Shown piece after piece: positions 11,307-32,886 of a stretch of 64,000 bases of DNA. The notes beneath the pieces are model-generated. The model worked only from the letters and a program-made list of their open reading frames with translations. It did no database searches and was not told where the DNA came from. Numbering within the stretch: position 1 is the stretch's first letter; the number at the start of each line of letters is the position of its first letter. The DNA comes from Macrostomum lignano (lineage: Eukaryota), in contig NIVC01000345.1 in assembly GCA_002269645.1 (NCBI GenBank), positions 1-64,000 of the forward strand. The letters are read 5' to 3'. A program made the translations under genes and the position numbers.

Positions 11307-14300
11307 TCAACAGGGATTAAGCTCAAATTCGCGCAATATTTTCAAGCCTTCCAAACAGCCGAAACGTTTCAGCGTTTCGGCCAGCTGCGACACTGTGAGG
11401 CCCCGATCTCGAATCAAGTTTAGCAGGCCTTGGTGCAACAAGTCGGCAGGATTTGTGTACTGGCGCTGCAGCAACTCCAAGTTGACAGCTGAGATGCCCA
11501 GATTCTCCAAAACCGGCCGATATTTGCTGCTCAAATCTTGAGAATTGCACAAACGTCGGGCCAGACCGGTTGTTGCAACAATTTCAGCATAGGAACGTTG
11601 CAACAATTCCACAATGTCACTCTGGTGCCCCGCTGTCACATGCTGGGACACTCTGACGGAACCGCTGCCACCGGTGGGGCGGTAAAATGACACCATTTCA
11701 CCTCCAACAGTTCCAATGCTCACGGTGAAGGCTCCACTTCTTCGCTGAGGGGTGTGTGTGTGTGTGTGTGTGTGCGGTCAGTGACAATTTGACCATCAGT
11801 GCCAATTCGACTATTAGCGACAATTAGACTGTCAGTGACAAAGTGAATACCAGTAAGAAATTGACTATCAATGACAATTAGACTCTGTCAGTGACAATTA
11901 GACTCTGTTAGTGACAATTTGGCTGACAGGGACAATTTGACCATCAGTGCCAATTCGACTATTAGCGACAATTAGACTGTCAGTGACATAGTGAATACCA
12001 GTAAGAAATTGAATATCAGTGACAATTAGACACTGTCAGTGACAATTTGACTAACAGTGACAATTTGACTATCAGTGACAATAGGATTGTCAGTGACAAT
12101 TTAACTGACAGGGACAATTTGACTATTAGGGACAAATTAAATATCAGTGACAAATTTAATATCAGTGACAATTAGACACTGTCAGTGACAATTTGACTAT
12201 CAGTGACAATTAGATTGTCAGTGACAATTTAACTGACAGGGACAATTTGACTATCAGTGACAAATTGAATATCAGTGACAGTTTGACTATCAGTGACAAT
12301 TAGACTTTGTCAGTGTCAATTTGACAATTAGTGACAATTTGACTATCAGTGACAATTTGACCATCAGTGACAATTTGACCATCAGTGACAATTTGACTAT
12401 CAGTGACAATTTGAATCAGTGACAATATAACAGTAAAAGCTTACCGATGATTGGCTGGATGAAACAGACTGGTCAACATTACCAGAGAGCCTTTCAGCCT
12501 CAGACACAGGTCGACCCTCAAACTGCATGGAAACAAGAAAGCATCGCAAGAATCATAGTATATCTTTGCACAAAAATGATTCATAATTCAGCAACTTACG
12601 TCTGGTTGATTAGACTGATCCATCGCATTGTCCAGCTGAAATTTAAACATTTGTAGGACTGGATGTGTTTAAGCTTTCGATGTATATCAGCTTTAGTAAA
12701 TAGACTTTGTAATAATTTTATGGATATTTAACACCTGTAGGATTGGGTGGGATTTTAACACCTGTGGGGATCGGATGGGATTTTAACACCTATGGGGATC
12801 GGATGGAATTTTAAAACCTGTGAAATCGGATGGGATTTTAACACCCTGTGGGGATCGGATGGGATTTTAACACATGTGAAATCGGATGGGATTTTAACAC
12901 CTGTGGCCTGTGGGGATTGGATGGGATTTTAACACCTGCGGGGATCGGATGGGATTTTAACACCTGTGGGGATCGGATGGGATTTCTGATACCATCACTG
13001 AGCCAACAACCCAAACAAACCTCCAGAACACTGAGCTCCTCTTCAACCGGACCAAGTGACACAGTCCTCGCTCGGACCTCAGCCGACGGAATGGTGTCAG
13101 CTGGTGGCAGCTCGCCCAGCTCATTCAGCACTCGGTTTCTCTCCCGCTCCATCTGGGTCAGGCTGCACATTCTCCACAGAGCGCTGATTTCGCTGAAAGT
13201 TGCCCGCTGCTCAGGCACCTGACAGGCCATTTTCTCCACAACAAGCTTAGTAATTTTTTGCAACTGTTCAAGATCTGCATCCCAGTTTCTCACAGGAATC
13301 TTATTAAAGAAACTATCGTCAACTAAGAGTTGAAAATCTCGAATGTGCTGTCCGATGCGTACTCTGCCTTTGAATGCTTCGATACGGTCCCCAATGACCT
13401 GACGAACGGACAGCTGACCGAATGCTTCGACTACGAACACAGCGTAGAGATACCTGTCGCCGAATATGTCCGGCTGTCTCAGTGGATCGTCGTAAGTTTC
13501 TGGCAAGCGACGTTCGACTCCACGCAGTCGCTCAAATGCTAACGTGTTCTGCGTGGCGATTGACTCCACTGTGCGTTTGGACAGGCCGAAATCCGCGATC
13601 TGGCGTGGTTGAGAGAGCGGCGCCTGTCTGTGCTGTCATTAGCATCTGACATTCTAGTCTGTGCTGTCGTTAGCATCTGACATTCTGGTCTGTGCTGTCG
13701 TTAGCATCTGACATTCTAGTCTGTGCTGTCATTAGCATCTGACATTCTAGTCTGTGCTGTCGTTAGCATCTGACATTCTAGTCTGTGCTGTCATTAGCAT
13801 CTGACATTCTAGTCTGTGCTGTCGTTAGCATCTGACATTCTAGTCTGTGCTGTCATTAGCATCTGACATTCTGGTCTGTGCTGTCGTTAGCATCTGACAT
13901 TCTAGTCTGTGCTGTCGTTAGCATCTGACATTCTAGTCTGTGCTGTCGTTAGCATCTGACATTCTAGTCTGTGCTGTCGTTAGCATCTGACATTCTAGTC
14001 TGTGCTGTCATTAACATCTGACATTCTAGTCTCTGATGTCATTAGCATCTGACATTCTAGTCTGTGCTGTCATTAGCATCTGACATTCTAGTCTGTGCTG
14101 TCATTAACATCTGACATTCTAGTCTCTGATGTTATTAGCATCTGACATTCTAGTAGTCTGTGCTGTCATTAGCATCTGACATTCTAGTCTGTGCTGTCAT
14201 TAGCATTTGACATTCTAGTCTGTGCTGTCATTAGCATCTGACATTCTAGTCTGTGCTGTCATTAACATCTGACATTCTAGTCTCTGATGTCATTAGCATC

Positions 14301-17300
14301 TGACATTCTAGTAGTCTGTGCTGTCATTAGCATCTGACATTCTAGTCTGTGCTGTCGTTAGCATTTGACATTCTAGTCTGTGCTGTCATTAGCATCTGAC
14401 TCATAAACAAATAACGCTACTATTAGTAGGCAAAAACTAAATAAATAAAAAACTAAGTATTAAGTCAAGTTTCAACCAGACCTTGGCATTCAGCTGGTCA
14501 TCAATCAGGACGTTGTCAACGGCCAAGTCTCGATGAAGAATTCCGCCACCGTCCCCGTTCTGCAGGAATTCGAACCCGTCAGACACCTGCAGCATCCAAG
14601 ATGTCACAAGCCAGGGGTGGCGGGTCCTGCCGCCGCCCATCTGCTGCTGGTGTTAGGAGAGTTTGGGTGGTACATGCACTCAATGTGATAGTCGATAGCC
14701 AGACAGACAGGCAGACAGACAGACAGACAGACAGACAGACAGACAGACAGACAGACAGACAGACAGACAGACAGACAGACAGACAGACAGACAGACAGAC
14801 AGACAGACAGACAGACACTAAGACACTAAGACAGACAGACACTAAGACAGAGAGACACTAAGACAGAGAGGCATAAAGACAGGCAGACACTAAGACAGAC
14901 AGACACTACATGTATGACAGACAGACAGACAGACAGACAGACAGACAGACAGACAGACAGACACTAAGACACTAAGACAGACAGACACTAAGACAGACAG
15001 ACACTAAGACAGAGAGGCATAAAGACAGGCAGACACTAAGACAGACAGACACTACATGTATGACAGACAGACAGACAGACACTAAGACAGACAGACACTA
15101 AGACAGACAGACAGACAGACACTAAGACAGGCAGACACTAAGACAGACAGACACTAAGACAGACAGACACTAAGACAGACAGACACTAAGACAGACAGAC
15201 ACTAAGACAGACAGACACTAAGACAGACAGACACTAAGACAGACAGACACTAAGACAGACAGACACTAAGACAGACAGACACTAAGACAGACAGACACTA
15301 TATTCTCAATCAAAAGCAACGCAGACAGTTTCAAGCACATACCATGGTGGACAGCCGCTTGGAGAACACCCTCAGACTGCCGTGCTTGCAGTACTCCATG
15401 GCGTAGCCGACCAGTTTTAACACTTCGTGACAGTAGATGTACAGAATTTTAATGAAAGCGCCGCGCTTCTTGCCCAGGTCGTGCATGTACTTGATCTCGT
15501 GCACCAGGTGCTTCACTACCCTGAATTTGAATAAACGGTAAGTACATGCGATACATGTGTAGAAATCAGTACTGAATTAGTCTTCAGTTCTAGAAATAAA
15601 CTATTCTCAAAACTTTTCTCCCTGTTGTCTTCATTACTTTACGTGAGAACCTGTCTCTCTGCTCTTCCCCAGTCCTTGAGAATCTGTCTCTCTGCTCTTC
15701 CCCATTCCTTGAGAATCTGTCTCTCTGCTCTTCTCCATTCCTTGAGAATCTGTCTCTCTGCTCTTCCCCATTCCTTGAGAATCTGTCTCTCTGCTCTTCC
15801 CCAGTCCTTGAGAATCTGTCTCTCTGCTCTTCTCCATTCCTTGAGAATCTGTCTCTCTGCTCTTCCCCAGTCCTTGAGAATCTGTCTCTCTGCTCTTCCC
15901 CATTCCTTGAGAATCTGTCTCTCTGCTCTTCCCCAGTCCTTGAGAATCTGTCTCTCTGCTCTTCCCCATTCCTTGAGAATCTGTCTCTCTGCTCTTCCCC
16001 AGTCCTTGAGAATCTGTCTCTCTGCTCTTCCCCATTCCTTGAGAATCTGTCTCTCTGCTCTTCCCCAGTCCTTGAGAATCTGTTTCTCTGCTCTTCCCCA
16101 GTCCTTGAGAATCTGTCTCTCTGCTCTTCCCCAGTCCTTGAGAATCTGTCTCTCTGCTCTTCTCCAGTCCTTGAGAATCTGTCTCTCTGCTCTTCCCCAG
16201 TCCTTGAGAATCTGTCTCTCTGCTCTTCCCCATTCCTTGAGAATCTGTCTCTCTGCTCTTCCCCATTCCTTGAGAATCTGCCTCTCTGCTCTTCCCCAGT
16301 CCTTGAGAATCTGTCTCTCTGCTCTTCCCCAGTCCTTGAGAATCTGTCTCTCTGCTCTTCTCCATTCCTTGAGAATCTGTCTCTCTGCTCTTCCCCAGTC
16401 CTTGAGAATCTGTCTCTCTGCTCTTCCCCATTCCTTGAGAATCTGTCTCTCTGCTCTTCCCCAGTCATTGAGAATCTGTCTCTCTGCTCTTCTCCATTCC
16501 TTGAGAATCTGTCTCTCTGCTCTTCCCCAGTCCTTGAGAATCTGTCTCTCTGCTCTTCTCCATTCCTTGAGAATCTGTCTCTCTGCTCTTCCCCAGTCCT
16601 TGAGAATCTGTCTCTCTGCTCTTACTCAGTCCTTGAGGCCTAGAATGCAATGCCTACATTTCAAGCTGAACTCCATAGTCGGCCTTATCAATTTACCAGT
16701 CCTTCTTGCTCATATCCTGTTGCTCATCCAGTTTAAATATTTTCAGAGCCATAGGCGCGTCATTTGGCGCGCTTTTCAAGTTGCACCGATGACAAACAGC
16801 AAAAGAGCCTTTGCCTGAAAAATGAATACGGGGCATAGAAAACACCTGGTAACCGAAATATGATTTAATAAATGAATATGATTAATACTGGAGCTCGATA
16901 ATAACAACTTACCAATTAAACTTTCTTCGGGAAATTCTACTTCAGTGTTCCACAAAACTTCTGGCGCTTTCACATCTGGAGCAATCTGTAAAACAACATC
17001 GATGGTTAATTTAGAAGAAGAGTACACCATGACTCGACAATTGATCAGCCAAAGAATGAACTCACAGATTCATTGAGCTCTTGTCGAACAAGCTTCAAAA
17101 CTTCCTGACGCGCCCTCTCCATCTTGTCAGGGCTGCAGGCGCTCCAAGTCTCTTTAACTTCACTAAATGAAGCCCTCTGTTCCGGGATGTGATGCGACAT
17201 TATCTGTACCACTTGCAAGATTGCCTGTTTGAGCCTGTTTAGGTCTCCATCAGACGAGGCCACTCCAACGAAACAATTAGCATTTAATAATTGTTGAAAA

Positions 17301-32800: not shown

Positions 32801-32886
32801 CGGCAAGAGATCTCGGATCGGCCTTTAAAAAGTGCGGCTGCTTAAATGGTCTACGAATTCTGCGAGATTTTGAGACGAGTAATTAA
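29861..32886 (+). CDS. Gene C: pseudokinase plus C-terminal death-fold domain (paralog of gene A), ~513 aa
   Basis: Exons 29861-29927 (alternative donor after 29912), 30029-30128, 30217-30361, 31060-31221, 31316-31961, 32465-32886 join in frame with the same 1-2-0-0 intron phases as genes A and B. The Gly loop is degenerate (SDTFADILRC), the beta3 Lys is kept (TVLK), there is no alphaC Glu, HRD is replaced (WDGEVTTDCVLIDEHLNAK) and DFG is replaced (VSLAT). The last exon aligns with the gene A death fold (LLTRSY..LIKRLCN / LLQRSY..LARRLCN; FKKCGCLNGLRILRDFE / LKRFGCLEGLKILREFE). Confidence 0.78.
30402..30862. repeat. 15-bp minisatellite (GGGGCTTTAGCACCA grading to GGGCGCCACCACAAG), gene C intron
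   Basis: Direct reading. Confidence 0.92.

Follow-up and report, generated by a model that had tools for sequence, protein, structure and literature searches.

Gene content of the locus

A contig of the flatworm Macrostomum lignano (NIVC01000345.1, assembly GCA_002269645.1) carries a cluster of four paralogous kinase-like genes, which we characterize in the following. We analyzed the first 64,000 nucleotides of this contig, referred to as the window, in which the cluster occupies positions 11307–32886: genes A, B and B2 lie on the minus strand and gene C on the plus strand (Table 1). The genes were delineated from the listing of open reading frames (ORFs) and from tblastn searches of exon-sized pieces against the window, and their models were put together manually, guided by splice consensus and by alignment of the paralogs. 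The exons of all four can be joined in frame and, except for the first intron, which C lacks, the genes have their intron positions and phases in common: the intron preceding the Gly loop is in phase 1, the one following a conserved Trp in phase 2, and those on either side of the exon with the HRD motif, as well as the one before the DFG motif, in phase 0. A profile hidden Markov model (HMM) of the family detected no additional copies when run on the window in six-frame translation; weak tblastn matches at 36–39 kb and at 3.9 kb, which we had considered as extra paralogs, were ruled out by the same search. Spliced GT-AG genes, minisatellites within introns and non-long-terminal-repeat (non-LTR) retrotransposons identify the window as eukaryotic.

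An earlier, sequence-only reading of this DNA had set the limits of the cluster at the same two positions, which are the stop codons of A and C, and had described two minus-strand genes, A and B, diverging from C. Strands and divergence hold, but the minus-strand genes are three.

A, B and B2 belong to the protein kinase superfamily, as judged by a significant match to the HMMs PF00069 or PF07714 together with the Gly loop, β3 Lys, αC Glu, HRD (or HxD) and DFG motifs, read from the alignment. Gene A encodes an intact kinase domain (GKGSFA, ALK, HEI, HRD and DFG; Pfam Pkinase, E = 3e-19); a linker leads from it to a death domain at the C-terminus. The product of B is 48% identical to that of A (46% and 50% by lobe) and matches Pkinase across the whole domain (E = 6e-23), with all catalytic motifs intact. 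B2 encodes a non-RD kinase, in which HLD replaces HRD, while DFG and the other motifs are intact (PK_Tyr_Ser-Thr, E = 4e-27); its tail is acidic or of low complexity. Searches with a death-domain HMM found no such domain in B or B2, including the tail of the latter, so that the proposed absence of a death fold from B extends to both kinase-only genes.

In UniProt, the 902-residue M. lignano entry A0A1I8JDI5 (P0001 in our list of matches) is a faulty, near-identical model in which portions of B2, B and A are fused and some exons are missed. A word-indexed protein search with the concatenated A sequence returned nothing at E ≤ 1e-3; later searches with this tool missed M. lignano proteins that were contained in the query alignment, and absence from its results is thus no proof that A, B and B2 lack annotation. 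Minisatellites fill the long introns of the four genes almost without exception, a different one in each, with units of 15–35 bp in 13–38 copies and 77–97% matches; the 15-bp repeat of the C intron is seen again at 55.4–56.4 kb.

The minus-strand genes are tightly packed, unlike B2 and C, which form the nearest divergent pair. The ATGs of these two (24002 and 29700) lie 5.7 kb apart, with a fragment of a long interspersed nuclear element (LINE) in the spacer between them, and the start of A is separated from that of C by about 12.7 kb and two intervening genes. We therefore find no compact bidirectional promoter between B2 and C. The head-to-head pairing proposed earlier is accordingly loose, and the likeness to paired plant nucleotide-binding leucine-rich repeat receptors, drawn at the same time, fails on their defining feature, a short shared promoter.

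A death domain shared by A and C

The last exons of A and C are homologous (tblastn E-values of 2e-9 and 5e-9 with 28–30% identity within the window; 31% identity over 101 aligned columns) and have the motifs LLxRSY, RLCN and GCLxGLxILRxFE invariantly in common. For the last 111 residues of A, AlphaFold2 (AF2) yields a model with a predicted local distance difference test (pLDDT) score of 85, compared with 53 for the whole last exon (145 aa). In a Foldseek search of the PDB with this model, the top 26 matches are all death domains (probability 0.69–1.0; TM-score 0.57–0.71, or 0.48–0.71 when target-normalized), among them those of FADD, Fas, TNFR1, RAIDD, RIPK1, ankyrin and Pelle/Tube, and CARDs appear only from rank 35 onward. 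C itself has no match to the Pfam Death family, and a profile search of the PDB with the alignment of both domains found nothing at E ≤ 10. On the strength of the predicted structure, we accept that A ends in a death-domain fold, and infer from homology to A that C carries one as well; in this respect, the sequence-only reading, which had proposed a C-terminal death fold common to both, is borne out.

Between its kinase and death domains, A has a short motif, TVSIG, within the linker sequence 'RRSGAFTVSIGTVGGEMVSFYRPTGGSGSV'. BLASTP places an identical TVSIG at the collinear position (residues about 383–387) of P0004, an unlinked M. lignano paralog described below, while the counterpart in C is degenerate (KISIS, about 32494–32508 on the plus strand). 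This is the position at which RIPK1 carries its RIP homotypic interaction motif (RHIM), and the low-confidence AF2 model of A's last exon (pLDDT 53) has a β-hairpin there. A search of A with Pfam found no RHIM at E ≤ 1, and TVSIG is without the Gln of the [IV]Q[IV]G core.

Gene C encodes a pseudokinase

C has no Pfam kinase match at E ≤ 1. Two unlinked M. lignano paralogs went into the family HMM along with A, B and B2; of C, this HMM aligns only residues 89–296, which correspond to the C-lobe (E = 1.6e-13). Here, the DFG motif is deleted: NAK/VS is followed by a three-residue gap and LATDSLK, aligned to NAK/IADFGLSK. The HRD motif is replaced, by DGE in the alignment to the family HMM or by GWD in that obtained with MAFFT, the catalytic-loop Asn is changed to Cys, and the activation segment is shortened. 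Because of these losses, C is a pseudokinase by its sequence, a term we apply when at least one of the VAIK Lys, the HRD Asp and the DFG Asp is lost, as is the last of these in C. The N-lobe is not alignable by HMM. Of the four motif losses that had been claimed for C, those of HRD and DFG are thus confirmed and that of the Gly loop, with DRGIPV in its place, depends on exon position alone, but that of the αC Glu is not established: the alignments of this region (ALRERI in C, HLVHEI in A) lie one residue apart, and with a one-residue shift the Glu may be kept.

The identity of C to A rises from 18% over the N-lobe and 24% over the C-lobe to 31% over the death domain, which is therefore the best-kept module of C; this conservation fits a non-catalytic role mediated by the death domain. 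Its roughly 480 codons extend over five exons without a stop or frameshift, though C is the most diverged paralog (~75% from A), and the frame of its last exon is open for 150 codons in DNA of 39% GC.

The last junction of C can be drawn in several ways. In frame are 31868 or 31961 joined to 32444 or 32447, 31961 joined to 32465, and 31678 joined to 32467. The pair 31678 and 32465, which combines the strongest donor (GAA/GTGAGT, 31679) with the first acceptor AG (32465), is out of frame.

The junction between B and A

The stop codon of B (17045–17047) lies just 15 nt before the only possible ATG of A (17030). Both are contained in a putative intron of 80 nt, read from the sequence, which has the consensus donor TCT/GTGAGT (17065) and the acceptor TTTTACAG/ATT, with the downstream exon starting at 16985. 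Its length is close to that of the other introns in these genes (84–101 nt), and its removal would link residues 1–333 of B to residue 16 onward of A in frame. Neither AATAAA nor ATTAAA occurs between the stop of B and the coding sequence of A, unlike in A, B2 and C, all of which show such a poly(A) signal 140–195 nt past their stop codons. Moreover, the transcript-based annotation of M. lignano includes P0151, a member of the family that has a pair of kinase domains. B and A may accordingly be one gene, encoding a tandem kinase–kinase–death-domain protein of about 847 residues, with retention of the intron giving rise to the kinase-only product B.

We put this forward only tentatively. An in-frame junction is expected by chance in one of three cases, and exon 1 of A has an ATG of its own and is about as long as an N-terminal extension would be. 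Furthermore, the acceptor also fits the trans-splice motif [T/C]TNCAG. The spliced leader of M. lignano has a terminal ATG (PMC8629364) that, if the leader were joined to this acceptor, would be in frame with A. About 30% of the genes in this species are trans-spliced to the leader and about 15% are found in operons, whose genes are spaced by about 100 bp (PMC8629364). In that study, genes count as an operon if they share a strand, if the distance between them is under 1 kb after adjustment for repeats, and if the downstream one has a [T/C]TNCAG trans-splice acceptor (PMC8629364). Here, about 710 nt separate the B2 stop from the B acceptor and about 60 nt the B stop from the A acceptor, and the acceptor motif is present within 55 nt of all three starts: 22 nt upstream of that of B, 11 nt upstream of that of B2, and inside the coding sequence in A. 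No such motif was found near the start of C. From their sequence, B and A would thus be either a tandem-kinase–death-domain gene or parts of a polycistron.

Relatives of the family

We searched 1.84 billion representative proteins with a profile comprising the kinase and death domains. Six matches fell below 1e-30: two are products of this locus, two are receptor kinases of plants, the scores of which are raised by repeated domains, and two are M. lignano paralogs. One of the latter, P0004, is a 504-residue non-RD kinase (HKD) with three gene copies (Mlig029749g1-3), whose death-domain-like tail is collinear with the linker and death domain of A (BLASTP E = 0.085); the other (P0003/P0151) combines a kinase domain of this family with ankyrin repeats and a second, canonical kinase domain. 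The remaining matches whose source was looked up are generic plant or protist kinases, save for one more M. lignano kinase, P0010. Beyond the window's own products, only M. lignano proteins (P0004 and P0151) outscored generic kinases in this set.

Against the PDB, the top ranks of the family profile are taken by EGFR, JAK2, FERONIA, CSF1R, FGFR3 and MLKL, and by these sequence matches the family is tyrosine kinase/tyrosine kinase-like (TK/TKL-like). In single-sequence searches, the best PDB matches of A include the RIPK2 kinase (E about 1e-7), a lead that is marginal.

Other features of the window

The spacer between B2 and C has an AT-rich stretch at 24–26 kb, as well as the LINE fragment, which is GC-rich. 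Outside the cluster, the window holds an apparently full-length non-LTR retrotransposon, the endonuclease and reverse-transcriptase (RT) ORFs of which are in different frames, and a series of small Cys-rich ORFs with the recurring patterns C...SYFSDGV and C.TC.TN.CN., which fall in the start of a 1005-residue protein as annotated in the duplicate copy of this region. An identity of the Cys-rich exons at 38.7–44.8 kb as Ly6/uPAR-like was considered and found no support in Pfam. Finally, an ORF rich in His, Gln and Ser lies in a GC-rich stretch and may be the single large exon of an unrelated gene.

Table 1. Positions of the kinase-like genes, their parts and other features in the window
Feature	Positions	Strand	Remarks
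ORF, His/Gln/Ser-rich	6457-7602	-	381 aa; no Pfam match
Gene A	11307..17030	-	529 aa, 6 exons; in frame, GT-AG sites
A exons	17030-16913, 16814-16697, 15520-15343, 14640-14482, 13599-13021, 11744-11307	-	splice model
Death domain of A	11310..11642	-	last 111 residues; AF2 predicted TM-score (pTM) 0.70
TVSIG motif in A linker	11712..11726	-	between kinase and death domain
Putative B-A intron	16986..17065	-	80 nt; GTGAGT...TTTTACAG; holds B stop and A ATG
Gene B	17045..20245	-	340 aa, 5 exons; intact kinase, no death domain; in frame
B exons	20245-20185, 19846-19738, 19194-19020, 18931-18773, 17563-17045	-	splice model
Gene B2	20980..24002	-	445 aa, 5 exons; in frame
B2 exons	24002-23933, 23831-23708, 23623-23449, 23002-22847, 21792-20980	-	splice model
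Spacer, B2 start to C start	24003..29699		5.7 kb; GC 0.28 in the AT-rich stretch (composition)
LINE reverse-transcriptase fragment	about 28100-29100	-	RVT_1, E 2.6e-5
Gene C	29700..32886	+	about 480 aa, five exons; exon phases match A, B, B2
C exons	29700-29851, 30217-30361, 31060-31221, 31316-(31678, 31868 or 31961), (32444, 32447, 32465 or 32467)-32886	+	last junction has alternatives
Death-domain-like region of C	32563..32883	+	107-aa ORF; tblastn vs death domain of A, E 2e-9 to 5e-9
Intron minisatellites	11778-12426, 13626-14400, 14701-15300, 15644-16637, 17639-18668, 30389-30860		
Cys-rich ORF series	38242-44800	+	no Pfam match
Non-LTR retrotransposon	46431-51402	+	GC 57-63%; 421-aa ORF1; endonuclease ORF (Exo_endo_phos_2, E 6e-21); overlapping 813-aa ORF with RT (E 1e-34) and RNase H (E 1e-12)

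Interpretation of the cluster

Death-domain kinases, such as RIPK1, the IRAKs and Pelle, are hubs of innate-immune and cell-death signaling in animals. To our knowledge, their evolution beyond chordates and arthropods is only patchily known, and pathways of this kind are little characterized in flatworms. We consider it reasonably probable that the four genes described here form a lineage-specific cluster of TK/TKL-like kinases that acts in death-domain–kinase signaling. The cluster would have originated by tandem duplication, the source of the three minus-strand genes A, B and B2, and by one inverted duplication, which gave rise to C on the plus strand. Homotypic oligomerization of its death domain might then draw A into a platform of the innate-immune or cell-death type, comparable to those of RIPK1 or IRAK/Pelle, on which it could be activated by proximity and subsequently phosphorylate its partners. 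B would contribute either a second kinase domain on the polypeptide of A, through splicing of the 80-nt intron, or a kinase-only paralog co-transcribed with A. C, if its death domain is translated in frame, could serve as a non-catalytic scaffold or competitor bearing a death domain, like IRAK-M or Tube, and would stand outside any tightly co-regulated 'paired' locus. For the activation of A through its death domain and for the role of C as a competitor or scaffold, we draw on the analogy to other death-domain kinases.

Several observations weigh against this interpretation. The death-domain call for A is built on an AF2 model computed from a three-sequence alignment, the Foldseek E-values of this model are just 0.15–1.7, and the match of A to Pfam Death (PF00531) stays below threshold (17.5 bits compared with a cut-off of 22.6, E = 0.0045, profile positions 13–84 of 86). 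An assignment of the kinases to the RIPK or IRAK families was rejected, given that the PDB profile ranking is led by EGFR, JAK2, FERONIA and CSF1R. No expression data on Mlig001164, Mlig029749 or Mlig024686 were found in full texts or supplements. The other points concern C, whose death domain could be out of frame with its pseudokinase part. A0A1I8GF20 (P0161), the sole public model of the latter, joins 31679 to 32465, out of frame, and ends ten codons after the junction; it is a faulty, truncated model without the death domain. The M. lignano genome is partly duplicated, with 180 Mb in blocks that are at least 95% identical (PMC5730564), and a second copy of the locus, on NIVC01003518.1 (95–98% identical), has C truncated: the match begins at 32561, 2 nt before an internal ATG of the last exon, so that the death-domain exon is parted from the pseudokinase, and upstream of it, GC-rich DNA (52–61%) with no relation to the window stretches over at least 10 kb. 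Insertion of a transposon, a rearrangement or a join made during assembly may account for this break. Lastly, the two copies of the death domain of C differ by four nonsynonymous substitutions, one synonymous substitution and one codon indel, and no purifying selection is visible; with five substitutions in total, dN/dS is uninformative.

The same observations on C give some room to a second explanation, in which C is a decaying or non-functional duplicate, that is a pseudogene or short-ORF fragment, and the cluster a recent, lineage-specific expansion of kinases in which C and A are not connected in function. We regard this as possible, though on balance unlikely. It would account for the truncated copy with its foreign flank and for the substitution pattern, as well as for the missing Pfam kinase match, the unalignable N-lobe, and a last junction at which the strongest donor and the first acceptor shift the frame. 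It is difficult to reconcile, however, with a reading frame that has stayed free of stops and frameshifts over all five exons, with conserved phases, in the most diverged of the paralogs. Moreover, the long open frame of the last exon, the C-terminal GCLxGLxILRxFE kept as in A, and the existence of in-frame junctions all speak for a coding gene.

The sequence-only reading had gone further and proposed that A, B and C form a co-regulated sensor–executor module with a shared divergent promoter, in which C is a decoy, scaffold or inhibitor docked to A through its death domain. Its domain logic stands, in that an apparently active kinase with a death domain (A), kinase-only genes (B and B2) and a pseudokinase with a homologous death domain (C) adjoin each other; the co-regulated pair found no support in our analyses. 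In favor of such a module, only A and C have death domains within the cluster, the death domain of C is better kept than its kinase domain, and the intact ORF of C, despite its divergence, points to long-term coding constraint. In addition, the last exon of C falls within a transcript-based gene model of the duplicate copy: PAA51012.1 (BOX15_Mlig001164g2, 108 aa), which is near-identical to the last ORF of C (P0006, 181 bits), is annotated there as a separate protein, and the transcript-based Mlig_3_7 annotation thereby holds the death-domain ORF of this copy as a gene (PMC5730564). Against it stand the distances between the starts of C and those of B2 and A, the LINE fragment in the spacer, the disruption of C in the duplicate copy and the public model of C that is out of frame for the death domain. 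Furthermore, the trans-splice acceptor motif near the starts of A, B and B2, and not of C, suggests that their transcripts are processed differently. We thus find the paired module a reasonable hypothesis that is neither required nor strongly favored by the evidence, and rate it as improbable; a lineage-specific cluster that arose by tandem and inverted duplication is the simpler reading.

Highly improbable, in our view, is a flatworm-specific, convergent RIPK1-like death-signaling system, in which a B–A tandem kinase with an amyloid- or RHIM-like TVSIG linker and a death domain would act with the non-RD kinase B2, and C would cap or seed the death-domain oligomer, although, if true, it would constitute a previously undescribed death-domain-based immune or cell-death pathway in Platyhelminthes.

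Should the lineage-specific cluster act in death-domain–kinase signaling as we favor, the family, with its kinase–linker–death-domain architecture, a pseudokinase that retains the death domain and possibly a tandem-kinase form, would offer a tractable case of independently assembled signaling logic. RNA interference and transgenesis both work in M. lignano. If, instead, the cluster is merely duplicated and partly decaying, it would be of interest for local annotation, where the public models are merged or truncated.

Comparison with known systems

In its module order, A resembles RIPK1, which likewise has its kinase domain at the N-terminus and its death domain at the C-terminus, joined by a linker in which a short motif is conserved, and the death domain of RIPK1 is among the Foldseek matches of that of A. 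However, the flatworm kinases show no specific affinity to RIP kinases, and their linker has TVSIG in place of [IV]Q[IV]G. RIPK1-5 have been reported only from chordates (PMC9573974). Because of this distribution, the lack of a specific kinase affinity and the missing RHIM match, the module order of A probably arose independently, and the likeness would be convergent.

Plant tandem kinase proteins and kinase–pseudokinase pairs have no sequence relation to this family beyond the kinase fold and are without death domains. If B and A are fused, which is putative, they would nevertheless be alike in having two kinase domains per polypeptide, with degenerate kinases in the family.

A further comparison is with the IRAK/Pelle family, including the pseudokinases IRAK2 and IRAK3/IRAK-M and the death-domain adaptor Tube. 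Here, too, death domains occur together with kinases of the TKL type, active and catalytically dead paralogs coexist, and non-RD variants are found (B2 with HLD and P0004 with HKD in M. lignano); kinases of the plant RLK/Pelle group rank close to our family among its generic matches. The members of the IRAK/Pelle group assemble by contacts between their death domains. They differ in the placement of the death domain, which is N-terminal in IRAK, Pelle and Tube, but C-terminal in A and C, and no orthology was detected.

Finally, the RIPK-like expansions of amphioxus, in which the arrangement of DEATH and kinase domains is shuffled, belong to another phylum, and their genes cluster with the RIPKs, which the flatworm family does not detectably do. 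As in M. lignano, however, they are lineage-specific tandem sets of kinases with variable death-domain content in an invertebrate (PMC9573974).

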